Part shown: piece after piece, positions 13,150 to 62,847 of the stretch | How positions within the stretch are numbered: position 1 is the first letter of the stretch | Layout of the letters: the number at the start of each line of letters is the position of its first letter | Assembly (NCBI GenBank): GCA_002269645.1 | Contig: NIVC01001613.1 | Location: 56,788-120,787 of the forward strand | From: Macrostomum lignano | Lineage: Eukaryota | DNA: 64,000 nucleotides | Reading direction: 5' to 3' | Notes under the pieces: generated by a model | What the model saw: only the letters and a program-made list of their open reading frames with translations | The model's database searches: none | What the model was told of the DNA's origin: nothing | Made by a program: the position numbers and the translations under genes

Positions 13150-13193
<44 letters not shown>

Positions 13194-15782: not shown

Positions 15783-19030
<3,248 letters not shown>

Positions 19031-30307: not shown

Positions 30308-30343
<36 letters not shown>

Positions 30344-34833: not shown

Positions 34834-36200
34834 ACAACAACAACAAAATACGCGGCCCCGCAATCAAACTCACAGAGCAGGGTGCGTCAGATGGTGCGCC
34901 GCAGAGCCTGGGAGCGAATGAAGTCCGCTCCGTTGGCAATATCGGGCGCCCCAGCGTCGCACAGCAGGCAGTCCACGTATCGACGGGTTCGGGCCTGACC
35001 CCGCCTCAGCGGGCCCTGCAAGGTGAGCAGCAGGACGTCCTGAACAGGTTGGGGGGCAGTAGCCCTCGGCCCAGATCACGTGGCCCGCCAGTTGAAGTCA
35101 CCGCCGGCGCAGGATGATGGACGGGCGCTGCAGCTTGGCCCAATCGTACAGGGCCTCGGTCCCGACGCTCTCGTCAGCTCGAAAGGTCGCACGGAGCAGC
35201 CCTGGGTGCGCCGAGTTCAGCTGCCGCTCCAGCGTAGCCGTCAGCGTCCACGTCTCGGCGTTGTATAGCAGGACGGTTTCGACCACCGCCTGCCACAGCC
35301 GAGCCCTCTGGCGGTCGGGCAGCGCTTCGGACTGGACGACGGCCCGGATTGAACGGAAGGCCGCCCAGGCGCCGCCGGAGGTCTTCACCCACGTGAGGCA
35401 CCAGACCGCCGAGGTAGGTGAACCGCTGGCAGCGTGCGAGTCTGGTCGTCTGCCCGTCTGCGCCGCGGCACGTCAGGTCCGCTGGGATGTCGGCCGGCAC
35501 AGTCAGCACCTCGGTCTTCAGGTCTGGTTGTCTGGTTGTTGACAACCAGACCGACGCTCGATGCCACCTCGACCAACCTGTCGATCTGGCGCTGGGCACC
35601 TTCAACGGACGAGGACAGGAGGGCGAGGTCGTCGGCGTAGCCAAGCACGCTTAGGCGCTTTTCTCCGTGGCGGCGACCGATGCGTCTGGGCAGCAGGAAG
35701 CCGTCGTTAGCCGAGGGGAGTGCAGTCCGAAGCACCCAGTCCAGGAGCAGCACGAAGAGGAACGGCGCAAGAGTGTCACCCTGCAGAACTCCTGATGAAG
35801 TGTCGAACAGGTCAGACAGGCCGTCCGCCGTCACCACAGCAGCTCGAGTATCGCAATACAGCGCCATGACAGCGTCAATTAGCTGCTGGGGTATCCGGTA
35901 GACTCGAAGGACAAAGTAAAGCGCGGCTCTCAACACCGAGTCAAACGCCTTTCGAAAGTCAACGAAGACAATGATCAGCATAGACTGGTGAATGCGCGCC
36001 TCCTCGATGACACGGCGGAGTGCGAGGATCTGTGTCACTGTACCGCGTTGCCGCCGGAATCCGTTCTGCTCGTACCGCAGGTACGGGTCCAGCACCGACT
36101 GCAGACGATCGATCAGCAGCCGGTTGAAGAGCTTCGCGGTGCCGGACATCAGCGAGATCCCGCGGTGGTCTTCTTTCCGCGTTGTCCCTGCCTTCTTCGG
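34834..36200 (-). mobile_element. 5'-truncated, frameshifted non-LTR retrotransposon (RTE-type LINE), reverse transcriptase plus 3' end
   Basis: RT motifs PKK..HRGISLMS, EQNGFR, FVDFRKAFDSV, GVLQGDTLAPFLF and YADD. Post-RT RTE-like motifs FTYLGG, ETVLLYNAETWTLT and RRLQLAGHV. At least two frameshifts, including an 8-bp AACCAGAC duplication near 35535. (TTG)n tail. TATATA on both flanks (34828-34833 and 36201-36206). Confidence 0.9.
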
Positions 36201-39700: not shown

Positions 39701-41783
39701 GCCTGTCTGCGTGATTCAAGTCTGTCTCTCAGGTTCAGTGTCTGTCTGCTTTGATTGCGAAGGGCGAAAGGCGAGGGAGACAGGGGAGGGTAAAGTGCAA
39801 TGGGAGATAGGAGAGGGTAAAGTGCAATGGGAGATAGGAGAGGGTAAAGTGCAATGGGAGATAGGAGAGGGTAAAGTGCAATGGGAAACAGGGGAGGGTA
39901 AAGGGCAAGGGGAGATAGGTGAGCGTAAAGGGCAAAGGCGGCAGGAGAGGGTAAAGTCTAAGGAAGACAGGGGAGGGTAAAGGCTAAGGGAGACAGAGGA
40001 GGGTAAAGGCTAAGGGAGAAGGGGAGCGTAAGCAGGAGAAAGTATACGCAATACAAAAAAGTGAGCAGAGTTTTATCAGAGCTTCGAAAACTGGTTAATC
40101 TACCAATGAATGCGGTAGGCAGTCATCAATGCAATAAATTTATTTTGCTGTCTGAAGTTACACTCGGCACTCACTTCTTATGAGTGCTGATTTTATTTAG
40201 AGTAGAACACTAACTAGAGAGTAGAAGTGAGAGTAGAACACACTAACTAGAGAGTAGAAGTGAGAGTAGAACACACTAACTAGAGAGTAGAAGTGAGAGT
40301 AGAACACACTAACTAGAGAGTAGAAGTGAGAGTAGAACACACTAACTAGAGAGTAGAAGTGAGAGTAGAACAGACCAGAGGGTAGAGAGAGGCATAACGC
40401 ACAGCGAAGGAAGCTAGAAAACCCCGAAATCAAGAGAGCCAAAGAACTGCGAGTAGAAGAAAAGGTCAGGAATAAAAATCCCCCAAAAGACCGTTGCCGG
40501 CAAACCCAATTATTGACCCAAATCAGAGTTCGCGAGCTCGAGTCCCAGCGCTAGACAATTAGCTAATGACTATGCGATCTTCGGATTAGCTCTAAACTTT
40601 AAGAATCTTCGGTTCTGCATTTCTGCGATTTGCTAATTGCTATAAAAGAAAACCTGATTATTAGGTTTCTGTTGGTCTAATATCTTGAAGCAACGAAGTT
40701 ACCAATTGTACTTTAGATTTTTCCCGGCGAAAGTTTAGAACAAAATTGCATGCAATCGTGCATAATAGTTGTTTTCAAATGTGACAATATTTAAAAAACA
40801 AAAAACAAAAAATGACAAAAGCATTTTTAAAAACACGAAAGGACACACATTTAAACAAATAACAAGACGCAAGAATGGAACACACGGATGGAACTCTTAC
40901 TACATTTAAACAGCATACATAAAAGTGACATTTTATTAGCAACAGATATGATAATGTATACGCATTAAAACAACAACAAACACTATAAATTGAACGCTTT
41001 TAAACAAAAAGAAACGTGATTAAGAAAATAGCAACTACAAAGGAGACAGACGACACGCATTAAAACAACAATAAACACGATGAACTTCACGCGTTAAAAT
41101 AACAAAAAACACGATATGACCATGCATTTTCAAAGAAACGCATAAATAACGCGATAAATAGCACGCATTTAAACAAACGAAATGTACGAGTACTTCAACA
41201 GTATTAAACGCGATAAATGACACGCATTGAAGCAACAAAAACACGTCAGTAAATAGCACGCAATTAAACAAAATAAAACCGCGGAAAACGCATAAATTTA
41301 ATTTTCTAGGACGACAGCAGCGAAGTGAATCAACATCATCAGTGCCCGCAGCTGACTCAGCAGCAGCAGCTTCAAGAAGACGAAAACAAGCAAAACGATC
41401 TGGACAACGAGGCTGACGACGACCAAGGTTTCGCGGACACCGGAGGTGACGGCGGGTCAGCGGGAAGGCGTCCAACCGAGGCGGCCATGTCACGGATGCT
41501 GGTTGAGCAATCTCAACACCGGCAGAGAATATCCCTGAGCCATGAGCGCCGAGCTTTGAGAACTCTCGGCATCATTATGGGAATTTTCATGCTCTGTTGG
41601 CTGCCATTTTTTGTAGTCTACCTGGGCGGAGTCTGGGACCTGCCGGCTCCCAAAGCGGTGTTCGACCTGTTTGTGTGGCTGGGCTATTTGAACTCGGCGC
41701 TGAACCCGGTTATCTACACCATTTTCAATGCGGATTTTCGGAGGGCGTTCGGCCGCCTGCTTCGCTGCAGACGTCCACGTTAA
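36786..41783 (+). CDS. Class A biogenic-amine GPCR, tyramine/octopamine (TyrR1-like) receptor, 2 exons, 396 aa
   Basis: Exons 36786-37502 and 41310-41783 (phase 0). GN in TM1, SLACAD in TM2, TM3 Asp in SDIFFCTAS followed by DRY, TM5 [36 protein letters not shown], and [14 protein letters not shown]. The ligand assignment is inference from similarity to invertebrate Oct/Tyr receptors. Confidence 0.9.
37536..38722. repeat. Two adjacent intronic minisatellites: 19-20-bp (TCTAATCTCAAATCGTCTGA) and 21-bp (CTCGTATATCTAATCTCTAGA)
   Basis: Arrays at 37536-38420 and about 38470-38722. Both units share TCTAATCTC. Confidence 0.95.
39135..40375. repeat. Further small arrays in GPCR intron: ~14-bp (39135-39420), 27-bp (39765-40030), 33-bp (40195-40375)
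   Basis: Units ATAATCTCACCTTG; GGAGAGGGTAAAGTGCAATGGGAGATA; GAGTAGAACACACTAACTAGAGAGTAGAAGTGA. Confidence 0.85.
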
Positions 41784-43928: not shown

Positions 43929-44024
43929 ATGAGACAGGCGCCGCCCAATTCCGTATCCGCTCCTGCAGCAGGAACAGCAGCAATAGTTGGCATTCCGTCT
44001 CAGTCTAGGCAGGTCCTGCAGCCT

Positions 44025-44075
<51 letters not shown>

Positions 44076-44102
44076 CAGCAGCAGCAGCAGCAGCAGCAGC
44101 CT

Positions 44103-44151
<49 letters not shown>

Positions 44152-47100
44152 CACAGAAGCGAGTAGACACACTGAGGTTCTTCGCAGCCAGCACAACTGC
44201 TCATGGTTTTCACAAGCTGAACCATCCAGTCAGAGCCTTCCAGATCGGCTGGCTGATACTCATCGGGTGCGCCTTCGCGGGCTTCAGCGTTCATCTGGTC
44301 ACTCTAGTCGTGAAATATTTAGACGAACCAATTACTACAAAAATTGATCCCAAAGGCAGCAGGTTTCTCTATCCGGACATTACCGTGTGCAACCTGATGA
44401 TGTTCGCCATCAGTAAGATATTCGACCAGCATCTGGTAAACAAGACCCAAAATTCGACAACATCGAAGCCAGTGTTCAGATACACTTTGAATAAGAAATT
44501 TAAACCATTGTACGACGATATTCAACAAGTCAGAGACATTCTAAACAAGAGTGTCCGGCAGTATCTGCTAGATAAGTTCGGCAACTACGAGTCCGATACG
44601 AGCCTGCTCAGGGTTGAAGATGACGGTCTGTACAATCTGCCAAGTGAGTTGCGCTGACTTCGCTGCTCTTCTGCTATAGAGACAAAGGCTAGAGTTCAAA
44701 GGGTGATGCCGCGGAGCACTTCCTTCAATTAGATACTCCCTGTCACCTGAGTCTTTGGGTTCCGATAGTAATTAATTAGCAACGCCCCTGAGTTTTAACA
44801 ATATTAGTTTAAAGTGGAGGTGCACTAAGCAGAATATATTTGTTATAGTCTACGACAAAAAGATTAAGACGAACTTAATTTACTCGACAAAGTTAAAACT
44901 CCCACGATTTAACATCGTGCAGCGTCCTTTTTAATTTAGTTGTCCATTTAGTTGTCCATGACAATAATAATAATATACTAATTGATTACACCTGCCATAA
45001 CGGCAGATGTGCAGCCGACAGCTCAGCCGCAGCTATTGCGCGGCGCATCTGAAGGCTGCGTACGGCTGTTTAGTCCGAAGACTGGGGGGGGGGGGGGGGT
45101 CGCCACACACACCCTCAATCACCCCAGCTAATGCTGGTACCCATTTAATTCCAGTGGGATCCGGAATCGAACCCGCGACTGATGACTCAAGTCGTGAGTC
45201 CGACGCTCTAACCACTAGGCTGCACCACCCTATAGCGACAAAAAAGATGAAGACAAAGTTACTCGACAAAGCTAAAACTCACGATTTTTTACGTCAGCTG
45301 TCGACGAACAAAGCTCATTGTGACAGACATTAAACCCACAGATTTGGTCATCCGAGACACCTACGGCTTGGAGAGAGTCTCCCAGTTCGCCCTCGATCCC
45401 AAAGAGATGCTGCTCTGGTGCTCGTTCGGTTCTCTGGCCTGCGACCACAACGACTTCTCCGCGATGACGCTGACCGCCTATCCATCCTGCCTGACGTTTA
45501 GCCTGGATAAGTTCCGACAACGACGGGGCACTTTGGTGAACGATCTGAACGAATTGCGAATGGTGCTGTTCACTGACTCGGTGAACCGGCATCCAGATAT
45601 CACGGCGGCTTTAGCCAACGCTCCAGGTACGGTTCGAAGATATTTGGGTAGCTCAACGGTAAGGCGTTCGAATCGATCGCGTTTAAGTAAAAATAATACC
45701 TGCAGAACGACTGCGGGCTCACTGGCGCAACGCCTTCGGCGAAATGTTCCCAAAACTAATTCTGAAGCTTGAGAACACTCTCAAGCGTACCTCTCAAGCG
45801 TACGCAGGCACGCACTCATACACGCTCACACAGGGGGTGTGAAACAGACCTGACGTTCTAATCGTCAAGGCATGTACACTGTTTGTGCCTTGGAGATGGC
45901 ATTCGAGGAATCGAACCAGGGGTCGTGCGGCGCGGGAATCGGACACGTTTACCACTGAGAACGTCAATTAGACACCATTCGAATCCTTGAAACAAAGCTT
46001 ATTTCAATTTTTGTAGGCGACGAGTTTAACATGCAGACGAACGGTGGAGCAGCCGTGCTCATTCACCTCCCAGGCACCTATCCAACCAATGGTCTTCTAA
46101 TAGAAGCTTCAAACAATCAGGAAACCATAGTAGACGTTCGTTATCAAAAGTACACGGCCATGAACACTAGGAAGATGCAGTGTCTGGACATGGAAGCCTC
46201 CGGACCGTCGGACACCACAAGCTACATGGTGGTGAAGGATGGCAAGGCAACGCTGGAACAGTTCAAGAAATTGCCAATCGACTGTCGAGTTCGGGCTGCT
46301 CAGGAATACCTTGTGGAAAACTGCGGATTCGTGGATCCAAATAAACCGATTGGATCCGAATTTATCGAACAGCATCGCAGAGGCAACTTGTCGAACTTGT
46401 ACCTGAACTCGTCCAGTCCGGACCCCGGATACATAATCGATCTAGTGAGCGAAGTGTTCAACAGCACCAACCAGAGCAGCAATGGAACTTACCGACTGCC
46501 AACCATTATTGAGAGCCTGTTGGACAATGAGACATGCTTGAGAATGGCTCGCATCCTGGTGACCAACGATACCAGAATGCAGAGCTGCTTAGAGAACTGT
46601 CTCACTAGGACCTACTCAGTAGGCTTCATGTCGAACGCTTGGCCAGTGTCAACCGGCGAGTTTCTCCAGCCGCTGCTCGAACGATGGCTTCAATCCAATG
46701 TGTTCTTTCTCAATGGAACGTCACGATCGGCGCAAACGATCAACACGGACTTCGTCCGAGCGACCAACTGGCATCTGCATCAAGCGTTCAATCGGTTAGA
46801 CGAGAGCCAGGATACCACAGTGGCGCAGAATTTCCTGGCTTTACGAATTCGAGTCGGTGACAGCCTCGGCCTGGGTCTACTCACCGAGGAGAACTGGGGC
46901 TATCAAGTGTACGATCTCATGTCCGATATTGGCGGCATACTGGGACTCTATCTTGGCATGAGCGTGCTCACGCTCTGCGAGATGATCGAACTCTGCCTGA
47001 GGCTGTTCGCGTTCAACTCGATTCTGACTTCTAGGGAGAGATTTATTGAAAATCAGAGACGAGGCTGCCGGCCCGCTGGCGGAGTCCCAGGCGGCCTGGC

Positions 47101-47239
47101 AATGAATGGCGTCAACAGCGGCATGGACTTGGACTTGGACGATGAGGAACCTGAAGGCGTCCGGCAAGCTGATGAGCAGGAGGGCTCGAATCAGCGGAGA
47201 GCAAATGGTTTGGCGAACGGCAGTTATCAGATTGGATAG
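43929..47239 (+). CDS. DEG/ENaC (amiloride-sensitive sodium channel) family subunit, 3 exons, 745 aa
   Basis: Exons 43929-44643, 45327-45626 and 46017-47239, phase-consistent, 2238 nt. STTAHG gating motif, TM1 (IGWLILIGCAFAGFSVHLVTLV), YPDITVCN, EMLLWCSF..C..NDF..YPSCLTF, WP motif, and TM2 LMSDIGGILGLYLGMSVLTLCEMIE with the GxS filter. Confidence 0.9.
44965..45235 (-). mobile_element. tRNA-derived SINE (family 1) in ENaC intron 1
   Basis: On the minus strand: head GGTGGTGCAGCCTAGTGGTTAGAGCG (A box), then GGTTCGATTCC (B box, plus-strand 45163-45173). The body is shared with 25825-25905. (TAT)n tail. Confidence 0.75.
45700..45965 (-). mobile_element. tRNA-derived SINE (family 2) in ENaC intron 2
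   Basis: On the minus strand: CTCAGTGGTAAA (A-box-like) and GGTTCGATTCC (B box). Homologous to 60165-60478 and 58185-58345 (GGCGCAACGCCTTCGG and AGGCATGTACACT blocks). Confidence 0.7.
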
Positions 47240-48259: not shown

Positions 48260-51200
48260 TCAACGACTGAACTGTACTCCTGGCTCCTCCATCTGCAGTG
48301 GGCGGTTTTTGCAGTACAGGTAGATTCCGATGAAGCCCATGCCAACCAGGATGCTGACCAGTAGAATTCCCAACACTGCCAGCACGGTGGCCACCGCTGA
48401 CAAGCCGATGGTGTCGCCCGGGTTGACGCTGTCGTTTCGTTCAATCCAGATTGAGCCATCGGTGTCGTATTGGCCTGAAATTAAAGTAAAGACCGGTGAG
48501 GAACCGGTAAAGACGGGGAGTAACCGGTAAAGACCGGTGAGGAAACGGTAAAGAGCGGTGAGGAACCGGTGAAGACCAATGAGGAACCGGTGAAGACCGG
48601 TGAGGAACCAGAAAAGATCGATAAGGAATCGATAAAGAATGGTGACGAACCGGTAAATACCGGTGATTTTGACACATGCACCATGTAAAGACAGAAAAAT
48701 ATCAGAGTAATTTTTATTACTGAAAATTGAATTTTCGAGTTAATTTTAATTCTTTTTCGAAACAGCTTTCATAAATGATTGTTGGTGAAAAAAATCGACT
48801 ATGATGAAAGTAAAACCGCGAAATCTTCTCTGAGCTATGTGATCTTAACAAAGTGGATTTCTGGCTGTCGAAAAGAAAGATTTATTTACAATTCAAGTAT
48901 CACGAAATCTCTGCATGCAGTGATGACGTGCGTGACCAGCTCGCCTTACCGTTACTCAGGAATAAGTTCGAGTCTTTAACGAAAAATTTAAATTCGGTAA
49001 GAAACGATTTATAGTACGTTTTTTATATAGCTCAAAAATGGTGTACACCAGGCTTACGTCGCTCACACGGTGTACACCAGGCACACGCTCACACAGGGTG
49101 TACACCAGGCACACGCTCACACAGGGTGTACACCAGGCACACGCTCACACAGGGTGTACACCAGGCACACGCTCACACAGAAAGTACACCAGGCACACGC
49201 TCACACAGGGTGTACACCAGGCACACGCTCACACAGGGTGTACACCAGGCACACGCTCACACAGGGTGTACACCAGGCACACGCTCACACAGGGTGTACA
49301 CCAGGCACACGCTCACACAGGGTGTACACCAGGCACACGCTCACACAGAATGTACACCAGGCACACGCTCACACAGGGTGTACACCAGGCACACGCTCAC
49401 ACAGGGTGTACACCAGGCACACGCTCACACAGAATGTACACCAGGCACACGCTCACACAGGGTGTACACCAGGCACACGCTCACACAGGGTGTACACCAG
49501 GCACACGCTCACACAGGGTGTACACCAGGCACACGCTCACACAGGATGTACACCAGGCACACGCTCACACAGGGTGTACACCAGGCACACGCTCACACAG
49601 GGTGTACACCAGGCACACGCTCACACAGGGTGTACACCCGGCAGCGCGCATAGCATTGTAATATTGTAGTTTGTACTACATGTACTTTGCCCATCAAAAG
49701 GTGTCATTATTGCACTCTCATTTCAGTCTTATTCAAATACGAGTACAAACTGTTTCGTTCAAGCAGCAAAATGGTAAACTTAAGTGCAAATAACTCAGTT
49801 CAAAGGCTGATTCACGATTCACCATTTATGGTAAGATAAACTGAACATTATGCACTTGATATGGCTATGCTTGAACTTGATTTGAGCATTGGGCAACTGG
49901 ATTGGAAAACCATGTAACGATTTTGGTAGATATAGATGATAAAACGCGGGAAAGCGGTCACGTGATGAAATTTTTTGTACATAGGGTAAATGTAGCACCG
50001 CACAGGATCAGGTGATAAGTAGCTTGTAACATGGACAATAATCTCATTGCTCCTTTCTAACCTTTGAGCCGCTGCTAATATCCATATAGGTCGCCGGGGT
50101 AAATTGCGTCCTGCGATTTTGCTATTTCAATTTCATTAAATCAGCTACCCTAGCTGGTACAGTTGAGATATTCCTCAGTTACTTTGCTAGGGTTTAATGT
50201 CTGAATTGAGAGCTGGTGAGGGTTTAGATGCCTGCAATGAGAACCGGTGATGGTTTAGATGTCTACATTGAGGACCGGTGAGGGTTTAGATGTCTACATT
50301 GAGGACCGGTGAGGGTTTAGATGTCTACATTGAGGACCGGTGAGGGTTTAGATGTCTACATTGAGGACCGGTGAGGGTTTAGATGTCTACATTGAGGACC
50401 GGTGAGGGTTTAGATGTCTACATTGAGAACCGGTGAGGGTTTAGATGCCTGAACTGAGAACCGGTGAGGGTTTAGATGTCTACATTGAGGACCGGTGAGG
50501 GTTTAGATGTCTACATTGAGGACCGGTGATGGTTTAGATGTCTACATTGAGAACCGGTGAGGGTTTAGATGTCTACATTGAGGACCGGTGAGGGTTTAGA
50601 TGTCTACATTGAGGACCGGTGAGGGTTTAGATGTCTACATTGAGAACCGGTGAGGGTTTAGATGTCTACATTGAGGACCAGCGAGGGTTAAGATGTCTAC
50701 ATTGAGAACCGGTGAGGGTTTAGATGACTACATTGAGAACCGGTGAGGGTTTAGATGTCTACATTGAGGACCGGTGAGGGTTTAGATGTCTACATTGAGA
50801 ACCGGTGAGGGTTTAGATGTCTACATTGAGAACCAGTGAGGGTTTAGATGTCTACATTGAGGACCGGTAAGGGTTTAGATGTCTACATTGAGAACCGGTG
50901 AGGGTTTAGATGCCTGAATTGAGAACCGGTGAGGGTTTAGATGCCTGAATTGAGAACCGGTGAGGGTTTAGATGCCTGAACTGAGAACCGGTGAGGGTTT
51001 AGATGCCTGAACTGAGAACCGGTGAGGGATTAGATGTCTACATTGAGAACCGGTGAGGGTTTAGATGTCTACATTGAGAACCGGTGAGGGTTTAGATGTC
51101 TACATTGAGAACCGGTGAGGGTTTAGATGTCTACATTGAGAACCGGTGAGGGTTTAGATGCCTGAACTGAGAACCGGTGAGGGATTAGATGTCTACATTG

Positions 51201-54200
51201 AGAACCGGTGAGGGTTTAGATGCCTGGATTGAGAACCAGTGAGGATTTAGATGTCTACATTGAGAACGGGTGAGGGTTTAGATGTCTACATTGAGAACCG
51301 GTGAGGGTTTAGATATCTACATTGAGAACCGGTGAGGGTTTAGATGCCTGAATTGAGAACCGGTGAGGGTTTAGATGCCTGAACTGAGAACCGGTGAGGG
51401 TTTAGATGCCTGAATTGAGAACCGGTGAGGGTTTAGATGCCTGAATTGAGAACCGGTGAGGGTTTAGATGCCTGAACTGAGAACCGGTGAGGGTTTAGAT
51501 GCCTGAACTGAGAACCGGTGTGGGTTTAGATGCCTGAACTGAGAACCGGTGAGGGATTAGATGTCTACATTGAGAACCGGTGAGGGTTTAGATGTCTACA
51601 TTGAGAACCGGTGAGGGTTTAGATGACTACATTGAGAACCGGTGAGGGTTTAGATGTCTACATTGAGAACCGGTGAGGGTTTAGATGCCTGAATTGAGAA
51701 CCGGTGAGGGATTAGATGTCTACATTGAGAACCGGTGAGGGTTTAGATGCCTGAATTGAGAACCGGTGAGGGTTTAGATGCCTGAACTGAGAACCGGTGA
51801 GGGTTTAGATGCCTGAATTGAGAACCGGTGAGGGTTTAGATGCCTGAATTGAGAACCGGTGAGGGTTTAGATGCCTGAACTGAGAACCGGTGAGGGTTTA
51901 GATGCCTGAATTGAGAACCGGTGAGGGTTTAGATGCCTGAATTGAGAACCGGTGAGGGTTTAGATGCCTGAATTTAGAACTGGTGAGGGTTTAGATGCCT
52001 GAATTGAGAACCGGTGAGGGTTTAGATGCCTGAATTGAGAACCGGTGAGGGTTTAGATGCCTGAATTTAGAACTGGTGAGGGTTTAGATGCCTGAATTGA
52101 GAACCGGTGAGGGTTTAGATGCCTGAATTGAGAACCGGTGAGGGTTTAGATGCCTGAATTGAGAACCGGTGAGGGTTTAGATGCCTGAATTTAGAACTGG
52201 TGAGGGTTTAGATGCCTGAATTTAGAACTGGTGAGGGTTTAGATGCCTGAATTTAGAACCGGTGAGGGTTTAGATGCCTGAATTTAGAACCGGTGAGGGT
52301 TTAGATGCCTGAATTTAGAACCGGTGAGGGTTTAGATGTCGGCAATGAGAACTCACGACTGTAGTAGGCGCAGGACGGCACTCCGCTTGAGCCGCTAGGT
52401 TTAGTTACCAAGGCCACCCCGGGCACTCGAATGCTACAAGTAGACCTCACTTCGTTCCCATTGTACGGCTCGCAGTAATAAAATCCATTGCATTTTTCGC
52501 CATAGTCTTCAACGCATCGACGAGAGCAATAATCCAGGTTGAGGTCGGAGTGGGTGGCCGTGTAAGCTGACAGGTCCGGTTGAGACACCTTGAACTGCTG
52601 CTTGAAATCCGTGGTGAACGACCTCGAATAGTGAGTACAGTTCAGGTTGGGCTCTGATTTCACCGAATCGTCTGATTTGTGGCTGGCACTCAGGTAGCAG
52701 AATTTCTTCAGGCCTTCGCCGAAATCGCAGATGTCGAAACTGCGACACGGCTTTGAGGGACTCGAGCCGACACAGGCGGCTGCGCACTCCCGATCTGTGT
52801 CCACCAGCTGCAGGTCTTTGTGCACGTCGATCAGGCGGGAGAGGCCCGGCTCTTTGGTGAACAGACCGAGCTCCGTCTCTGGGAAGGGAGTTTGTGGTTG
52901 AGCAACTCTCTACCTGCGTACCTTTATTGGTGTCTTCGTGTCTTGATGTCTGAGTGTCTTGGTGTCTGAGTGTCTTGATGTCTGAGTGTCTTGATGTCTG
53001 AATGTCTTCGTGTCTTGATGTCTTGGTGTCTTGATGTCTGAGTGTCTTGATGTCTGAATGTCTTCGTGTCTTGATGTCTTCGTGTCTTGATGTCTGAGTG
53101 TCTTGATGTCTGAGTGTCTTGATGTCTGAGTGTCTTGATGTCTGAATGTCTTGGTGTCTTCGTGTCTTGATGTCTGAGTGTCTTGATGTTTTCGTGTCTT
53201 AGTGTCTTCGTGTCTTGATGTCTGAGTGTCTTGATCTCTGAGTGTCTTGATGTTTTCGTGTCTTAGTGTCTTCGTGTCTTGATGTCTGAGTGTCTTGATG
53301 TCTGAGTGTCTTGATGTCTGAGTGTCTTGATGTCTGAGTGTCTTGATGTCTGAATGTCTTGATTTCCGAGTGTCTTGATGTCCGAATGTCTTGATTTCCG
53401 AGTGTCTTGATGTCCGAATGTCTTGATTTCCGAGTGTCTTGATTTCCGAGTGTCTTGATTTCCGAGTGTCTTGATGTCTTCGTGTCTTGATGTCTGAGTG
53501 TCTTGATGTCTGAGTGTCTTGATGTCCGAGTGTCTTGATGTCCGAGTGTCTTGATTTCCGAGTGTCTTGATGTCTGAATGTCTTGATTTCCGAGTGTCTT
53601 GATGTCCGAATGTCTTGATTTCCGAGTGTCTTGATGTCCGAATGTCTTGATTTCCGAGTGTCTTGATGTCCGAATGTCTTGATTTCCGAGTGTCTTGATT
53701 TCCGAGTGTCTTGATTTCCGAGTGTCTTGATTTCCGAGTGTCTTGATGTCTTCGTGTCTTGATGTCTGAGTGTCTTGATGTCTGAGTGTCTTGATGTCTA
53801 AGTGTCTTGATGTTTGAATGTCTTGATTTCCGAGTGTCTTGATGTCCGAATGTCTTGATTTCCGAGTGTCTTGATGTCTGAGTGTCTTGATGTCTGAATG
53901 TCTTGATTTCCGAGTGTCTTGATGTCCGAATGTCTTGATATCTGAGTGTCTTGATGTCCGAATGTCTTGATATCTGAGTGTCTTGATGTCTGAGTGTCTT
54001 GGTGTCTCACGACTCAACTAACACTGGTAACTCACTATCGTACAGGTTGCACAGTCCTCTCTGCACAACCTTGTCAGGCTGCTCCCTCGGCGAGGCGTCA
54101 TTGAGCAGGCACTGGCCCAGGCTGTAGCAGTAGGTGAACGATTTGCACTCAAAATCTGCGTTGCCAAGGCAAGCTTCGGCGCAGTCGTCAACAGACAGGG

Positions 54201-57200
54201 CATCCAGCATGGCTCTGGTTGGCGGCATTCCCGCACTTTTGGTCACTTCGAACTGGAACAGGTGTCTGCCAGTCAGAGCCAGGTCTACGTTTGGTCGAAC
54301 TTCGAATTGTTCAATATCGAGAGCGGTGATGTTGACAATGTCGATGTTTCCCGTTTCCGGCGTGATTTTCTCCATTGGAACCCGGAATAGGCTGCTGTCA
54401 ACGTAGGTCACTAGAAGGTCGAATGCCGTCTCCAAAGATAGCTCAAGGGCGTCTGGGCGGATCACTGATACCGGGCCTGAAAATCACATTGGCGGTGATC
54501 TTCTTTGAAGTTTCTCTAATTAATTAATTTTTTTCTACCTTTGCTTACAAACTAATCAGTCGGAACCATTACATAAAAGACTCGCTGCTCTTATCAGCAC
54601 GTGACTCACCTATCATACAGGTATAATTGCTGTTCTATTATCAGCAGGTGACTGGGCTATATCATACAGGTATAATTGCTGTTCTATTATCAGCAGGTGA
54701 CTGGGCTATATCATACAGGTATAATTGCTGTTCTATTATCAGCAGGTGACTGGGCTATATCATACAGGTATAATTGCTGTTCTATTATCAGCAGGTGACT
54801 GGCCTATATCATACAGGTATAATTGCTGTTCTATTATCAGCAGGTGACTGGGCTATATCATACAGGTATAATTGCTGTTCTATTATCAGCAGGTAAAAAG
54901 GTGGAATGTTCTTCTCTTCGGTTATGCAAATATCCCTGGTCACTTTAAAATAGCAACAAAAAAACGAACAACAAAAGCAATAAATAGCGATAAGATTTCC
55001 GCTACTCAAACAGCTTCTACTCACGAATGAGCACGGAACACTGATGAGTCTTATCCGGGTTCTCCGTGTCCTTTTTGAAAGACGAGCTCAACAGGCAGTT
55101 CGAGCCGGATTTCGAGCCGGGGCAGAAGGCCACACTGTTGCAGGGCGGCATCAGAAGGCTGTTGCAGCGGCGAAGACAGTCCAGCTCGCTGGCTACATTG
55201 GCAGTCTGCTCGGCGCTTTCAATGTACCGGTTTGGTCCAGTGAGTCGGTTGAACTGGGCTGAAATGCCGTTTTTTTTAAATAAGTTATTAAATTATTTGA
55301 AATAATAATGAAACAGGTAAGAGACTAGCGCCCCTGGTGCTAAAGCCCCTGGTGCTAAAGCCCCTGTGCTAAAGCCTCTGGTGCTAAAGCCCCTGGTGCT
55401 AATGCCCCTGGTGCTAATGCCCCTGGTGCTAAAGCCCCTGGTGCCTTAGAGCTCCGTTTCCAATCCAGATCTCGATTTTGATAAGTCCATGAACCGAAAT
55501 CTTGAGCATTACTTAAAGAACCCTATTAAAAAATGATGAAAGGAGATCTCAGTATTTAAAGCCAAGCTAAATCGCACAATTATCAATTCACGAATGAATT
55601 TTTATCCAAAGAGCACAGCAGCTCGTACAGGTTCTTGCTGCGCAAATGCGCGAATATCAATGTTGGCCTTAAGTCTGTTTCAGATTATCCTCTGATAATC
55701 CCCCGACAGTAGAATCACCAGCTAAAATGTAATTAAGTATGCAATAGATGCAGCGGATTCCGTCCTCACCGTACGGATGTGGCCCATCTAGCAGGGTGAA
55801 GATTAAATAGATGAATACATCGTCATAGTCGAGTCTTACTCGCTGAAATCTGATCGGATTAACAAAACCCAGGTCAGCGTTGGCCAGTACTTTAGTGGCC
55901 CGGCGAATGAATAAATTTTGACTGCCCTTCACGTACTTGTCGTAGATACCGCCTGTGGTCATAGATAGAATTTGTGTCTATTTGTTACATCCATAGGCAA
56001 AAATAGTCATAGTCAGCAATCAGAAATCTGTGGGAGTCCTCTGAGCATTGAGTAATCTATAGAAGTCAGCTGATCACTCGATTGTTTATGGGATCGAGTC
56101 AGCTGATCACTCGATTGTCTATGGAAGTCAGCTGATCACTCGATTGTCTATGGAAGTCAGCTGATCACTCGATTGTCTATGGGAGTCAGCTGATCACTCG
56201 GTTGTCTATGGGAGTCAGCTGATCACTCGATTGTCTATGGAAGTCAGCTGATCACTCGATTGTCTATGGGAGTCAGCTGATCACTCGGTTGTCTATGGGA
56301 GTCAGCTGATCAATCAGTTGTCTATGGGAGTCAGCTGATCAATCAGTTGTCTATGGGAGTCAGCTGATCACTCGGTTGTCTATGGGAGTCAGCTGATCAA
56401 TCAGTTGTCTATGGGAGTCAGCTGATCAATCAGTTGTCTATGGGAGTCAGCTGATCAATCAGTTGTCTATGGAAGTCAGCTGATCACTCGGTTGTCTATG
56501 GAAGTCAGCTGATCACTCGATTGTCTATAGAAGTCAGCTGATCACTCGATTGTCTATGGAAGTCAGCTGATCACTCGATTGTCTATAGAAGTCAGCTGAT
56601 CACTCGATTGTCTATGGAAGTCAGCTGATCACTCGATTGTCTATGGAAGTCAGCTGATCACTCGATTGTCTATGGAAGTCAGCTGATCACTCGATTGTCT
56701 ATGGAAGTCAGCTGATCACTCGATTGTCTATGGGAGTCAGCTGATCACTCGGTTGTCTATGGGAGTCAGCTGATCAATCAGTTGTCTATGGGAGTCAGCT
56801 GATCATTCGCTTGTCTATGGGAGTCAGCTAATTAATCAGTTGTCGGTGGGAGTCAGCTGATCAATCAGTTGTCTATGGGAGTCAGCTGATCATTCGGTTG
56901 TCTATGGGAGTCAGCTAATTAATCAGTTGTCGATGGGAGTCAGCTGATCAATCAGTTGTCTATGGGAGTCAGCTGATCACTCGGTTGTCTATGGGAGTCA
57001 GCTGATCAATCAGTTGTCTATGGGAGTCAGCTGATCAATCAGTTGTCTATGGGAGTCAGCTGATCAATCAGTTGTCTATGGGAGTCAGCTGATCACTCGG
57101 TTGTCTATGGGAGTCAGCTGATCACTCGGTTGTCTATGGGAGTCAGCTGATCAATCAGTTGTCTATGGAAGTCAGCTGATCACTCGGTTGTCTATGGGAG

Positions 57201-60200
57201 TCAGCTGATCACTCGATTGTCTATGGAAGTCAGCTGATCACTCGGTTGTCTATGGGAGTCAGCTGATCAATCAGTTGTCTATGGGAGTCAGCTGATCAAT
57301 CAGTTGTCTATGGGAGTCAGCTGATCAATCAGTTGTCTATGGGAGTCAGCTGATCAATCAGTTGTAGGTTGTCCCCTTACCATTCAAGAATCGAATAAGA
57401 ATATTCTTTCTCTCAGCCTTGGCGTAGCACTGGGTAACGTCCAAGTCGTAGGGTTGAAGCTGATCAAAATCTTTCTCAGCGTCGGGTTCAACTTGGGTGT
57501 CGAAATTGTAGAAATTGTAAACCTCCTGGTAGTTAAAAGTCGGATCATCAATCTGAAATGTTGCGTTGTTATATTTTTTTACCCCTGTTTAAGAGGTGTT
57601 TAGCTGCAGAATCATGCAGCTCCCATGTCAAGATGCCTTGCCTGTTGTTCTAAATCTATTTATTGATTTCGGTGCAACCTTCTTGCTCAACATAAACAAA
57701 AGTACAAAAACCCTCAAACTCACTTGGCCCAGCGATTTGTAGTTGGTAATCCTCAACTGTACAGGGATATTCTTCCCTTGGTTGATTTTGTTCTTTCCCA
57801 GAACGACTTCAGACACGCGAGGCTGCAAAAAACAAGAGAAAGACGAAACGATTTCAATATGAGTTTGACTAATGACCAGGATATGACCAGATGGGTCTGG
57901 CACTCTACCTACGAAGGCCAACTATATCCCAAAGCAAAAAGTATAATTGTAAACTGTCACAGCGTTGGCAAAGTCAGGGCCTGTGGCCCATCCCAGACTC
58001 ACATCAAGCATCTCGTATTCAAAAGTGAAGTTCATGCCCGGCCGACCTTTGATTTCATAGTCCTTTCGCAGCGATATGTATCGGTGAATTGGAATGCCGC
58101 GAACAACGCGCTAGAAATGTTGAAAGGAATTGTTTTTGTAATATTTTTGCACTTTAAGCGACATTGTCACACAACCGGCGACAGGCATTACTGCCCATTC
58201 CGCCGACTCCCTGAGCAGGCACACAAGAGCGCGGATACGTACGCAGTCGTACGCACAGGCACACACTCACACAGGAGTGTACAGCGGCCCTAACTTTATC
58301 GATCGTTAGGCATGTACACTTCACTGTGCCTTGGGGTTGGCCCTCAAGCTGGGCGCTAATTGCACGCTTTGACTCCTCGTCAGTAAAATTGTTTGCAATC
58401 GCAATTTTACTGATAAAAGTTAATTACTGTAAACTGTAAGACCTTTACCTTGCCAGTAAACTGATAGGTCTCATCGATCCTGAACAAATCCTTGGGACTT
58501 CTCAGCTCGATAATGTCCCAGCCAGGCCGGTCCTTGATCGGTGGATCTTCAGTGTCGAAGAAGTCGTTAGAGATCGGCTTGTCGGTGCAGTTGCCGATCA
58601 GGTCGTCGATAAAATAGGAGATACCTGTTTAAATGATTTTTGAGATGGCAGTTTAGCTTGCTTGCATTGTAACTTTTGGCACCTTTATGACTGCGCCCAT
58701 ATCGCCGATCCCCTCACTCTCAAGGTGTAGAACGGTCGTGGGGTCCTCATTGTCAACCCAATTTTTCACGATGAGGTTTAACTAAGTTAGTCTTAATTAA
58801 ATTGAAAAGACTCTGTATACTCGTAGTAATGGCAACTTTCGTGTGGATCGCACATCAATAGTGTTTCAGGGCGCAATCCCTCCTCATGAGATACTTCTTT
58901 TTTAATTTATTTTTTTCAAATTTGTGCTCAAAGCGTGCATGATTTAATAGCCTGTTTGTTAGTCTGCTTCAATCAAAGCATTGCTAATTGCTTTTGTATC
59001 TGGAAACCGAAATAATAAACGAAACATTCGATTCTAAACCAATATGCTTAGTTTGCTTAATTCATAAATGGAAAATTTATGATCTTATTTATTTCTATCT
59101 TTTTCATAAATGGAAAATGGAAAATGGAAAATTTCGTTTGTAAATGGTATACTTACCAGTAGTGAAATCCTGAATAACAGTCATTGAGCCAGGATTATAG
59201 AATGGCGGTTTGGTATCTCCATTGGGGTCTCTGAACTGGTACTTGACTAAGAATTGCGACCCATCGTAGTACACGTTGCCGTACTGCACCATCTCCAGGG
59301 CGGGATCGTGCACCAGCATCTCCTGGGTGTAGCTCATCACAGCTGGCAGCTCTGGCGGCTTCTGCACCTGCATCCGATCTTCGCAGTACACTCCGGTTGG
59401 GGTCTACAGATTGAGTTGCGGAGTTATTGATTGGAAAATTCAAATGACGTTATGAACTTTGAAATTGTAGAAGTTTCCCTGTAGACCGATTGAAAAAAAA
59501 CATTACATTTTTTCAACCTTTAAATTGACAGGTTGAGATAATAAGCTAGAGATTTATATTCATGATAGCAACAATAATAATACTTGTAGGAGGGCTATGA
59601 GGCCATCCTAGCTCAACGCATGCCAAATTAACATCGGAACGGAGCCACGAGGTTAAATCAATAACTTAATTGAAACAGTCGATTGGAAACGCCGAGACAT
59701 CCTGTCCGGGTCCCTTTCTTTTGCTCCCTTTCCTCGTATCCAGGGGGCAAGGGGGCCTCGCCCCCTCCCCTCCCAATGGGCTGGCAAAGACATGATGCCC
59801 TAAATGACACGTCAAACGGTCCTCGAGCACTGTCGTCCCACGTCAAGAGCACAGTAAGCAGCATTGGCCAAAAACTGATTAGTACAGTACTAGCTAGACC
59901 TACAGCAGTAAAACAAATCTCTGAACACCAAAACTCACGTCAAAGATGGTATTTTCAGCCATCAGTACGTCGCGAAACGACACAAAGTCGTAAATCATGT
60001 GAAACTTTCTCGGATTGCTAACGTCACCGGCCTCGCCAATGACTTCCGCACGAACTGGCAGGTTTACATCGTACGGCGTGTTCCAGCTGCTGGCTGCAAC
60101 AGTCACGTAAGAGTCACAGTAAAAACTTGGTTTACACAATACTTCGTAATAAGTTTAATAATTGTAGGAGAACTGCAAACAACCCTGGCGCAACGCCTTC

Positions 60201-61850
60201 GGTGAAATCGTTCCACGAGAAACGTTGACGGCGATTCTGGCCATTCCGCTCACTCCTAAGCACACAAGCGTGTCAATACTGTACACAGGCACGCAGTCAT
60301 GCACACGCTCATACAGGGTGTACATCGGCCCTCTGACTTTCTAATCAGTCAGGCATGTACACTTTCTGGGCCTTCTGAGCAGTCATGACTGTGAATCGCA
60401 CGACAACGCACGTCTTCGTACGGAATCGAACCTGGGGTCGTGACGCGAGACTCATACGCGTTTGCCGCTGAACTGCTCCGCCCCACTAGACTTACATACG
60501 TGTAGTGACCTTATGTAACATTTAAGTAATACCTGAAGGTCTTCAAATTCTACCGAAGTTTTGGACTAAAATTTTGCTGAAATCTACTGGAAAGTTAAAT
60601 CTGATAAACCTTTACATTTATTGTATCGTGTTTAACTGCACTATAAAGTACTTAAAAGGGTCACAGAAATGTTTTAAGCATCTTTTCGGGCCCTAACTTA
60701 CCAGAAAAGTACCAGTGCACTTCAAAAACCGCCTTTCGTTCCTTCCAAGTCTGACAACTGTACCAATAGTCCACCGTGATGCCGCGAACTATCGATTTGT
60801 TGCGGTACTCCTGTCAAATATTAGACCGACCCCAAGGTTACTTGTTGAAATATTTTAAATGTACAATTAAACTCCTTCTAAGGAAACGGGTATCTATACT
60901 TACCATTCCAAATTCTTTGCTAAATCTAAGCATTAGTGCCGACGATGGCAGCAGTCTACCATCTACGCCGAACAGTAGATCCAAATCAGTCTTGCCAGTC
61001 ATGTTGATCACGAGGCAGACCAGGTCATCTGCGGTTGCACGAAACACATGCTGATAATTGTATTACCATAATTTAAAGTTCCAGCATGATAGCAGAACTC
61101 ACTGAATATAACGTAGATCTCTCTGGTGGCATTGTTATAAATATAGTCGTCAATCTCTCCATCTTTTTGGTAGCGTCGGATCCTCACGTTTCCTAGGTAA
61201 CCGTCAAACCATTCCTGAAATTCGTAAGTCTGATTCTTAGTGAGGATGTTCATCTCTATCCTAGTCTGGTAGGATGGTGGAATGTAGGGCAGGCCGACGC
61301 CCTCTGAAAAAGAAAGAATGAAAATAAAATGAGAAAATTAGGATTGCTTCAGGATAATTACGAGCGTATATTCGTTAAAATATACGAGTATGTATGCTTT
61401 CAAGATTAAGCTCTCCACGAGTCTTAGTAGTCTTCAATGCGTGGCAGTTGAACCGTCAAGACAAAGATATCAGAACCTTGTAAAGCAGACGTTGTACCGA
61501 TGGAACATCAAGACAAAGCTACCAGAACCTTGCATAACAGACGTTGTACCGATGGAACATCAAGACAAAGCTACCAGAACCTTGCATAACAGACGTTGTA
61601 CCGATGGAACATCAAGACAAAGCTACCAGAACCTTGCATAACAGACGTTGTACCGATGAATAATCTAGTAAAAGCTATTAGAATCTCGAAAGAACCTCGT
61701 GTAGCTGAGGAACTCCCTATAAAACATGGTGCAAGCCTCACCTGTTGTATTAACTTTCTGGCAGAATTCGCCATTGGCGAAGCCGCAGAATTGACACGAG
61801 ATTACTGCCAGAGCCAACAGAATCCACGCTACAAGCTGTCGGATGGCCAT
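48260..61850 (-). CDS. Large type I membrane protein: signal peptide, two putative LolA/ependymin-like repeats, SEA-like module, four PAN/apple domains, TM; 15 exons, 1031 aa
   Basis: Exons 61850-61742, 61303-61103, 61028-60904, 60810-60702, 60093-59939, 59403-59157, 58624-58449, 58110-58003, 57822-57724, 57552-57381, 55952-55770, 55258-55025, 54476-54036, 52878-52357 and 48474-48260. All are GT-AG and phase-consistent; 3096 nt with no internal stop. Internal repeat motifs: IVRGITVDYW/VVRGIPIHRY, LPVRAEV/IPVQLRI, and IYDFVSF..IFDTPTGVYC/VYNFYNF..LDVTQCY. PAN pattern C-3x-C...C.SF.YC...C.L...C..Y occurs four times. TM VATVLAVLGILLVSILVGMGFIGIYLY. The LolA/ependymin and SEA fold names are inference. 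Confidence 0.85.
48485..48665. repeat. ~21-bp degenerate repeat (ACCGGTGAGGAACCGGTAAAG)
   Basis: Adjacent to the acceptor of the last exon. Confidence 0.8.
49040..49640. repeat. 28-bp minisatellite (GTACACCAGGCACACGCTCACACAGGGT)
   Basis: About 21 copies. The unit matches an internal segment of SINE family 2. Confidence 0.97.
50205..52340. repeat. 31-bp minisatellite (GAACCGGTGAGGGTTTAGATGTCTACATTGA / ...GCCTGAATTGA)
   Basis: About 2.1 kb with two unit variants. Ends about 15 nt from the donor at 52356. Confidence 0.97.
52930..54005. repeat. Short-unit (TGTCTTGATGTCTGAG-type) minisatellite
   Basis: Fills intron 52879-54035. Source of the RHSDIKTL pseudo-ORF. Confidence 0.95.
54610..54895. 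repeat. 49-bp minisatellite
   Basis: ATCATACAGGTATAATTGCTGTTCTATTATCAGCAGGTGACTGGGCTAT, about 6 copies. Confidence 0.95.
55328..55445. repeat. 15-bp repeat (CCCCTGGTGCTAAAG)
   Basis: About 8 copies. Confidence 0.9.
56062..57365. repeat. 29-bp minisatellite (GTCAGCTGATCACTCGATTGTCTATGGGA)
   Basis: About 45 copies filling most of intron 55953-57380. Confidence 0.97.
58185..58345 (-). mobile_element. Partial SINE family 2 copy
   Basis: Matches the internal part of 60230-60375 (CCATTCCGC..ACTCC, CAGGCACAC..CACAGG.GTGTACA, AGGCATGTACACT). No recognisable head. Confidence 0.6.
60165..60478 (-). mobile_element. tRNA-derived SINE family 2 copy
   Basis: On the minus strand: GTTCAGCGGCAAA and GGTTCGATTCC boxes. 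Shares its 3' block with 45700-45745. Confidence 0.7.
61455..61655. repeat. 52-bp tandem repeat (~3.5 copies)
   Basis: Period of 52 seen at 61501/61553. First coding intron of the PAN gene. Confidence 0.9.
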
Positions 61851-62847
61851 CTGTAGAGAAATTATTGAATAAACTGTCAGATTTCGATTTCGAGAGCAAC
61901 TAACGAGCACTTTTTTCTCTTGTCTGTCCCTGGTGCCACCAGCTCCTACAGAACGCAGGTGAGTTAAGCTAAACCAGATTTTATCAGTCCAGCTCAAGCA
62001 GCGTATGGACTCATAAGTTTGTTATCAGCTGCCATCTAGCAAGAGCTGGGCACATACCTGCAGCTATGCTTAAAAGCTTCAGAGCAAATAACTTAAAATT
62101 GTTTAAACTTTCTCCTGTGCATTAACTAGGTGGATTCTAATGTCTTATCGTGAAGGTCAAAAGCTCAATTTATCATGACTGTTGCGTGCCCAAAGTGCTA
62201 TTACCTTATTACCAAGGTCATTGGCAGGAATGCTCTGTCTCTACATTTAATTGCTAACCCGCATCTGTGGTACAGCTAGAAAAGGTTAACAAGGGTCACT
62301 CTGTTCGCACGAGCGGCACCAAGACCAAGCAGATACCACTTTTTAGTCCTAATTGTCGCTAAACTCATGCTAATTCATGCCAAATTTTATCATTTAAAGG
62401 TATTTTTAGCCTACGAAAATTTATAGAGTGCAGGAAAACATCAGTTAAACTTCAGTAACATTTGTATATTAAGCTTAAAGTATATTAAGTTGTAAGCCGC
62501 GGACAGGTTTACGACTATGAGGCTAGCCTATAGCATACTCAAGCGAGCGGTTTAAGCGTTCATAAACTTCCGCTTTATGGAATAATGGATACGATAGAGT
62601 GGGCTACTTGCACCTGGGGGCCCCAAAGTCTCTAAGAACCTCGCAGAATGCAGTGGAATTTTAACAAGTCAATCAATTCACCCTCTTCCTGCTGCTCAAA
62701 GGATTGAAAGCTCAGAGATCCATGTGCATGCAATCCATTCGCTTTTTACTCTTGAAAAAAATCAGTCATAGCTGTATTACTGTCAGTAGCATTAACATAT
62801 TTTCATAGAATGAAATAAAGATGGAACAAACAAACTAACAGAAATAA

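Follow-up and report, generated by a model that had tools for sequence, protein, structure and literature searches.

A type I membrane protein of Macrostomum lignano with paired domains of predicted LolA/EPDR fold and four PAN domains

The window considered here, a stretch of 64,000 nucleotides from the flatworm Macrostomum lignano, carries on its minus strand a gene of 15 exons that begins with an ATG at 61850, closes with a stop codon ending at 48260 and codes for a protein of 1031 amino acids. We are confident in describing the product as a transcript-annotated type I membrane glycoprotein with two domains of LolA/EPDR (ependymin-related) fold, to which a juxtamembrane alpha/beta domain and four PAN/apple domains are joined. 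The holding of a hydrophobic ligand is proposed as its core function by analogy with proteins of like fold, a proposal given somewhat less than an even chance, and the explanation taken whole, in which the structural and the functional judgements are blended, stands a little better than even. Public databases already contain both the gene and its domain family, what is said of function is read from the fold, and the protein is best called a catalogued yet uncharacterised variant of the EPDR/LolA kind. The observations made in an initial annotation of the sequence are confirmed, and its interpretation, a membrane-anchored receptor for lipid capture or uptake, is supported in part.

To our knowledge the characterised ependymin-related proteins are all small soluble binders of lipid or pigment, whose physiological roles remain a matter of debate. 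A conserved tandem version anchored in the membrane, found across the invertebrate bilaterians, would put the LolA fold to a different use, that of a cell-surface receptor.

One gene and its product

The coding sequence of 3096 nt is an uninterrupted frame, with all 14 introns of the GT-AG type and phases consistent throughout. Its spliced translation is identical at 1031 of 1031 residues to the NCBI protein BOX15_Mlig027239g2 of Macrostomum lignano (P0001 below), and the locus is that of contig NIVC01001613.1 in assembly GCA_002269645.1, at 100% identity along 13,591 nt. Because of the identity to P0001 the phase-consistent 15-exon model of the initial annotation, its coordinates and the tail sequence given there prove exact, and intron 2, of 74 nt, is borne out likewise. 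The model was made by scanning the minus strand from 62.3 to 47.8 kb stop-to-stop and joining the chain of open segments by hand, with the acceptors of exons 5 and 10, and exon 11 itself, set by alignment to P0001 and to a clam homologue (P0002, 956 aa, 28% identical to the window protein), both found in a search of a collection of 5.8 billion proteins. A model of 14 exons and 977 residues was rejected on this comparison, having two acceptors wrong and one exon too few.

In GenBank the annotation of NIVC01 was built from a genome-guided RNA-seq transcriptome, and the DV1 assembly contains much redundancy and many tandem repeats (PMC5730564). A second genomic copy, on NIVC01000814.1 (L001 10001-23033), encodes the same protein as 48260-61850 of the window, with exons 1-14 identical and three synonymous changes in exon 15, and it fits the known redundancy of DV1. 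Most of the unique intron sequence is 100% identical between the copies, the differences lying nearly all in intronic tandem arrays. Since unique introns are as identical as exons, the two are recent duplicates or haplotypes, and as evidence on selection they are uninformative. An intronless contig of 3409 nt from run SRR30276804, most simply a transcript, encodes a relative of 1001 residues that is 44% identical to P0001 and colinear with it at 14 of 14 exon junctions, and full-length colinear orthologues occur in an annelid (Owenia), a nemertean (Lineus) and a clam. Minisatellite fills introns 10, 13 and 14, which are long (1.2-3.9 kb), as would suit a fusion of two adjacent genes or a decaying pseudogene, but either artefact is very unlikely, because 1031 codons stay open across 14 introns of matching phase, the annotation is transcript-derived, the second locus codes for the same protein, and both the orthologues and the intronless contig are colinear at full length. 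The single gene of the initial annotation therefore stands.

The signal peptide, single transmembrane (TM) helix and 17-residue tail reported earlier are read from the sequence, which has a hydrophobic N-terminus and the tail CKNRPLQMEEPGVQFSR, and from helices at residues 2-19 and 987-1016 of an AlphaFold (AF2) model, and they describe a type I single-pass protein. The ectodomain holds 30 cysteines, an even number, and 10 N-x-S/T sequons. Four PAN domains had been counted, and four blocks are indeed found, each with exactly six cysteines in the spacing C-x3-C-x7/8-C-x5-C-x5..11-C-x18..21-C. On the whole protein Pfam PAN_1 (PF00024) scores 51.5 bits, and in a per-domain scan with a cut-off of 21.4 bits PAN1 and PAN2 pass, PAN3 falls just under the threshold (scores in Table 1) and PAN4 has no PAN_1 match. 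The assignment of this putative fourth domain is supported by its six-cysteine signature and its colinearity with PAN4 of P0002.

Anchoring seems a property of the family, in that hydropathy places a C-terminal TM segment in 75 of 94 aligned relatives, with a median tail of 19 residues. A motif of the form hydrophobic-x-[FY]-x-polar is present in 25 of those 75 tails as against 9.2 +/- 2.5 (maximum 17) when tails are shuffled, and VQFSR of the window protein is one instance of it. Among sampled spiralians it reads [VM]-x-F-[VT]-[NKR] (VHFVN, MSFVN, VSFVK, VQFSR) and among sampled deuterostomes [VI]-P-Y-x-x-Q. No known sorting signal was recognised in the motif.

P0001 is present in GenBank and in UniRef, under the name 'Apple domain-containing protein' (1031 aa), and its precomputed Pfam matches are PF25898 'LolA_2nd_metazoa' and PAN_1; the former assignment comes from a listing without coordinates, the Pfam copy scanned here holding neither PF25898 nor PF25899 and reporting only PAN. 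UniRef calls two relatives 'LolA-like domain-containing protein'. With the PF25898 annotation and these names the LolA-likeness of the protein is already catalogued, and the word undescribed, used in the initial annotation, is too strong for an exact protein in GenBank and UniRef that PF25898 already matches. Exhaustive phmmer searching with the 525-residue N-terminal module gives 366 representatives (counted at 50% identity) at E<=1e-3, 210 at E<=1e-10 and 63 at E<=1e-30. Named members of 30 sampled clusters come from molluscs, an annelid, nemerteans, a brachiopod, echinoderms, a hemichordate and amphioxus, and in this non-exhaustive sample there are no vertebrates, arthropods or nematodes. 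A homologue search with a 16-sequence profile returned one protein only, which adds the PF25899 label and nothing on taxonomy. A few relatives are annotated as fusions to iGluR ligand-binding and channel domains, SRCR, fn2 or teneurin-type EGF (for example P0044, Owenia, 1400 aa), being either real architectures or merged gene models.

Paired beta domains and a split juxtamembrane domain

The initial annotation saw two beta-rich aromatic repeats, and on profile evidence these two domains of about 220 residues are a tandem internal duplication. It is visible only by profile-profile comparison, pairwise BLASTP of repeat 1 with repeat 2 being non-significant (E 0.81), whereas profiles built from 88-92 relatives match with a probability of 99.6% and E 2.9e-24 over 183 columns, and the VRGI, PV..I and aromatic/Cys motifs fall in register.

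The full-length AF2 model, based on a 94-sequence alignment, has a mean pLDDT of 84.7 and a pTM of 0.71. It had been proposed that AlphaFold and Foldseek should return LolA, LolB or EPDR1 folds for the N-terminal region, and such folds do head the PDB matches: the best is sponge EPD-BCP1 (8i34; E 7.5e-8, TM score 0.67), followed by frog, human and mouse EPDR1 (TM score 0.57-0.67) and then by RseB/MucB, VioE and LolA among the top matches, all with a probability of 1.00. The TM scores are 0.36-0.46 to LolA and RseB and 0.53-0.63 to VioE. By DSSP each repeat of the model is made of six strands, a loop and five strands (6+5), and in EPDR1, a homodimer, strands 1-6 and 7-11 make up a sheet of 11 strands that has a deep hydrophobic groove (PMC6363788). 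The Foldseek matches and the strand pattern in common with EPDR1 together support a predicted LolA/EPDR fold, and the claim is extended to both repeats because they are homologous to one another and have the same pattern. Near-invariant positions of the family are Cys, Gly, Pro, aromatics and one Arg, and the near-invariant pairs C108/C240 and C328/C485 lie in places comparable to the EPDR disulfide C113/C210 (human EPDR1).

The EPDRs (EPDR1/MERP and EPD-BCP1; 6e7o, 6jl9, 8i34) are thus the best structural matches of the window protein, and apart from the 11-stranded 6+5 sheet of each repeat the two have in common the secretory pathway, disulfides and N-glycan sites, with a mid-strand and a C-terminal Cys per repeat that appear to be ordered like the most conserved EPDR disulfide. 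They part in that EPDRs are soluble, single-domain homodimers of about 200 residues, while the window protein has two linked copies, an anchor, an alpha/beta domain and four PAN domains. With bacterial LolA/LolB, RseB/MucB and VioE an open beta half-barrel is in common, and RseB is likewise a two-domain protein. Unlike the window protein, these bacterial proteins are periplasmic and without disulfides or such a membrane anchor (PMC6363788). True homologues are the PF25898/PF25899 proteins (Lingula LOC106173269, S. purpuratus LOC580499, Patella LOC126816707), with E values down to 1e-137 across the 525-residue module. These are mostly of the common family form of about 650 residues, made of signal peptide, two LolA-like domains, juxtamembrane domain, TM helix and short tail and lacking PAN, whereas the window protein is of a form of about 1000 residues, seen in flatworm, clam, annelid and nemertean (the sampled members being all spiralian), in which PAN1 splits the juxtamembrane domain and PAN2-4 come after it. 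The six-Cys signature of the PAN domains is that of other PAN/apple proteins (the plasminogen/HGF N domain, factor XI/prekallikrein, apicomplexan MIC), and four tandem-like copies are present as in factor XI/prekallikrein, but no protease or kringle partner is present, one copy is nested and the set is joined to a LolA-like pair.

What had been taken for a separate module without cysteines is the C-terminal half of this split domain. In the short relatives the counterpart of residues 488-561 plus 640-715 is a single uninterrupted alpha/beta domain of about 120 residues, to which hhalign aligns the N-terminal half with a probability of 99.8% (E 1.7e-28) and, from a clean five-sequence alignment, the C-terminal half with a probability of 85% (E 5.9e-6; positions 87-123 of the short-form domain). 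An AF2 model of the domain from relative P0034 (pLDDT 90.6) has the topology beta-alpha-beta-beta-alpha-beta-beta. Foldseek against the PDB finds no significant match for it, the best (E 0.023) being generic ferredoxin-like folds, with a weak likeness to the C-terminal domains of EpCAM and Trop2 and to a SorCS2 domain (probability 0.8-0.9, E 0.13-0.34), and the domain profile against PDB sequences gave one chance match (E 0.53). Assignment as a SEA domain was considered and is unsupported by Foldseek. The domain is probably Pfam PF25899 (DUF7959), judging by the order in which Pfam matches are listed; PF25899 is listed for the Lingula relative and is not among the precomputed matches of P0001.

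Exons 11-14 are all symmetric, of phase 1-1, and PAN1 is exactly exon 12. In the PAN-less gene of Lingula, the one short-form gene compared, a single phase-1 intron falls in the codon seven residues past the second Leu of LL[DE], and this is the position and the phase of the intron that ends exon 11, seven residues past LL[DE] in the LL[DE]..G loop. Because the symmetric PAN1 exon sits at the phase-1 intron of its Lingula relative, exon shuffling accounts for it most simply, a PAN exon having probably entered a phase-1 intron that was already present within the juxtamembrane domain. As the arrangement is common to flatworm, clam, annelid and nemertean, the insertion would most simply date to an ancestor of the sampled long-form members. 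The insertion is a detail new in this analysis, and the nested exon would be a small example of how exon shuffling can place a domain in a conserved phase-1 intron.

Ligand binding and the competing readings

The fold encloses a hydrophobic groove in EPDR1, EPD-BCP1, LolA and VioE, and in LolA the groove binds the acyl chains of lipoproteins. The groove of EPDR1 binds lipids (PMC6363788) and that of EPD-BCP1 binds carotenoids (PMC10470211). By analogy the two LolA-like domains may hold one or two hydrophobic ligands (a lipid, sterol, carotenoid or acylated molecule) at the cell surface, and since EPDR1 is homodimeric the tandem pair may be its intramolecular equivalent, the two domains packing as a copy of the EPDR1 homodimer within one chain. 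The membrane-proximal alpha/beta domain and the stalk would hold this ligand-binding unit clear of the membrane, docking to protein or glycan would come from the four PAN domains, and the short tail would serve sorting or the binding of a partner and not signalling. A tail of 17 residues that has a short family motif and no signalling domain argues for a binding, uptake or co-receptor molecule, and the protein would not then be an autonomous signalling receptor.

A number of points weigh against the fold assignment and the function drawn from it. The Foldseek matches come without query ranges, so that which repeat is matched is not specified, and the structural matches are no more than 12-15% identical in sequence. 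Pfam Ependymin (PF00811; gathering score 32.3 bits) has no match at E<=1 or E<=10 on the model or on P0001; weak matches occur in five of 46 relatives (best E 4.2e-6), and of ten multi-repeat relatives two have very weak matches of 16.9 and 18.4 bits, far under the gathering score. The family profile finds nothing among PDB sequences at E<=1, and the 525-residue N-terminal region as a single sequence finds there only chance P450 matches (E 0.9). The term ependymin-like, as first applied, thus holds at the level of fold, by Foldseek, and fails at that of sequence, where neither Pfam Ependymin nor any PDB sequence is matched. LolA-fold proteins include the peptide and lipopolysaccharide sensor RseB and the enzyme VioE, and the fold therefore leaves the class of ligand unfixed. 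Literature searches on the family, on PF25898, on Mlig027239, on LolA-like with apple and on flatworm ependymin found nothing, and all 30 sampled clusters are named 'uncharacterized', which agrees with the earlier statement that the family has no known characterised function.

Built on hydrophobic-ligand binding is a broader and distinctly tentative proposal, that these are ancient bilaterian single-pass receptors in which a covalent EPDR/LolA pseudo-dimer would capture at the cell surface a specific hydrophobic ligand (such as a dietary or microbial lipid, a sterol or a carotenoid), to be taken up or presented to a partner. Vertebrates and ecdysozoans, neither being among the 30 clusters sampled, may have lost the family, and in spiralians it would have been re-aimed by exon-shuffled PAN domains, PAN1 having entered the phase-1 intron of the juxtamembrane domain.

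Protein or glycan binding might instead dominate, in a recognition or adhesion receptor of innate-immune or cell-matrix type that takes microbial or matrix ligands through its PAN domains, possibly with LolA-like domains acting in the manner of RseB. The presence of four PAN domains, RseB and MucB among the top fold matches, the size of the family at 366 representatives, the odd SRCR and fn2 fusions of some relatives and the several Haliotis rubra loci on one contig, an expansion of the sort that would be typical of immune or environment-facing genes, all speak for this reading. We nevertheless consider it unlikely, for the commonest form of about 650 residues, sampled deuterostomes included, has no PAN at all, which points to a conserved core function in the LolA-like pair and the juxtamembrane domain, and the best structural matches are binders of lipid and carotenoid and not RseB.

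Cleavage in or near the membrane-proximal domain or the stalk, of EpCAM/Trop2 or SEA type, would shed the ectodomain as a soluble tandem carrier of EPDR-like kind. The topology of the juxtamembrane domain and its weak resemblance to EpCAM, Trop2 and SorCS2 fit such a route, as does the solubility of all characterised EPDRs (PMC6363788). Shedding is nonetheless improbable, in that the structural matches of this domain are non-significant, no autoproteolysis motif is seen in the sequence and the cytoplasmic motif recurs in the family; from its recurrence it can be argued that the anchored form matters. Very improbable is a catalytic role for the LolA-like domains, as a cofactor-less enzyme on a hydrophobic substrate after the manner of VioE, since although VioE, kievitone hydratase, Fsa2 and PNGase are among the Foldseek matches, those other than VioE have TM scores of about 0.16 and root-mean-square deviations above 22 A, no conserved group of polar catalytic residues is apparent and the closest matches are non-enzymatic binders.

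RNA interference and in situ hybridisation are possible in M. lignano. A transgenesis method exists for it as well (PMC5730564), and the animal could be used for finding what EPDR-type domains bind in vivo.

Features of the locus

Table 1. Exons of the gene in the window and domains of the encoded protein (positions are those of the window)
Feature	Residues	Position	Strand	Content	Basis
Exon 1	1-36	61742..61850	-	Start codon, signal peptide, Cys30	P0001 identity; AF2 helix at residues 2-19
Exon 2	37-103	61103..61303	-	LolA/EPDR-like domain 1 begins, strands 1-5	P0001 identity, AF2 and Foldseek
Exon 3	104-145	60904..61028	-	LolA-like domain 1, near-invariant Cys108	P0001 identity, family conservation
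Exon 4	146-181	60702..60810	-	LolA-like domain 1, VRGI...W.SC motif	P0001 identity, family conservation, profile match
Exon 5	182-233	59939..60093	-	LolA-like domain 1, PVRAEVIG and F.H.YDF..F motifs	P0001/P0002 alignment
Exon 6	234-315	59157..59403	-	Domain 1 end (Cys240), linker, LolA-like domain 2 start	P0001 identity, profiles, AF2
Exon 7	316-374	58449..58624	-	LolA-like domain 2, Cys328	P0001 identity, conservation
Exon 8	375-410	58003..58110	-	LolA-like domain 2, second VRGI motif	P0001 identity, repeat profiles
Exon 9	411-443	57724..57822	-	LolA-like domain 2, IPVQLRI motif	P0001 identity, repeat profiles
Exon 10	444-500	57381..57552	-	LolA-like domain 2 end (Cys485), first strand of juxtamembrane alpha/beta domain	P0001/P0002 alignment, hhalign
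Exon 11	501-561	55770..55952	-	Phase 1-1; juxtamembrane domain, N-terminal half (helix, beta2, beta3), probably DUF7959	P0001 identity, hhalign
Exon 12	562-639	55025..55258	-	Phase 1-1, 234 nt; whole PAN/apple domain 1, nested in juxtamembrane domain	PAN_1 21.6 bits, six Cys
Exon 13	640-786	54036..54476	-	Phase 1-1; juxtamembrane domain, C-terminal half (helix and strands, Cys-free), then PAN2	hhalign; PAN_1 39.8 bits
Exon 14	787-960	52357..52878	-	Phase 1-1; PAN3 and PAN4	PAN3 20.8 bits; PAN4 by Cys signature and P0002 alignment
Exon 15	961-1031 and stop	48260..48474	-	Stalk with conserved DG[ST] motif, TM helix, 17-aa cytoplasmic tail ending VQFSR	P0001 identity, AF2
Signal peptide	1 to about 27				Hydrophobic N-terminus MAIRQLVAWILLALAVISC
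LolA/EPDR-like domain 1	about 40-252				
LolA/EPDR-like domain 2	about 253-487				
Juxtamembrane alpha/beta domain, N-terminal half	488-561				
PAN1	562-639				
Juxtamembrane domain, C-terminal half	640 to about 715			Cys-free	
PAN2, PAN3, PAN4	about 716-960				
Stalk	961-986				
TM helix	about 987-1014				
Cytoplasmic tail	1015-1031	48260..48313	-	17 aa, CKNRPLQMEEPGVQFSR	

The window looks eukaryotic, in that its exons are short, its introns are GT-AG and minisatellites are numerous. The exons of the gene range from 33 to 174 codons and are scattered among intronic minisatellites, which make up most of the intron length (48486-57365 and 61456-61658; introns 1, 10, 11, 12, 13 and 14) and yield spurious open reading frames of up to 295 codons; it is on this account that the gene is so hard to see in the open reading frame track, as was remarked at the outset. 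Among the arrays are one of 29 nt x46 at 56027-57365, one of 16 nt x68 at 52927-54007 that is nearly all of intron 13, and one of 31 nt x70 at 50189-52352 that begins 5 nt past the exon 14 donor, with further intronic arrays of 28 nt x21.5, 49 nt x5.8, 21 nt, 15 nt and 52 nt. Directly 5' of the start codon, at 61851-61862, lies an acceptor-like pyrimidine-rich sequence (...tctctacag; atttctctacag followed by ATG), and as trans-splicing is common in M. lignano (PMC5730564) the site could be a candidate spliced-leader acceptor.

The convergent downstream neighbour, at 43929-47239 on the plus strand, is a DEG/ENaC gene (amiloride-sensitive sodium channel, Pfam ASC) of at least two large exons with poly-Gln near the N-terminus. 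Further away, 36786-37631 and 41325-41783 (+) encode a rhodopsin-family G-protein-coupled receptor (Pfam 7tm_1) with DRY- and NPxxY-type motifs, an amine-receptor-like look and an intron of about 3.7 kb in the region of the third intracellular loop, and just upstream of it, at 35385-36149 (-), is a reverse-transcriptase (RVT_1) fragment of a retroelement. From 1 to 34000 the window is dominated by tandem arrays (for example 5823-6668, 12384-13784, 17671-18753, 27563-28733, 29577-30532 and 32502-33087), with strong strand skews (GC skew up to +/-0.46) and repetitive pseudo-open reading frames on both strands. The same part of the window holds an intronless gene for a calmodulin-like protein of 150 residues with four EF-hands at 8341-8793 (-) and an exon of a Ulp1/SENP-type cysteine peptidase (Peptidase_C48) at 3289-4035 (+).

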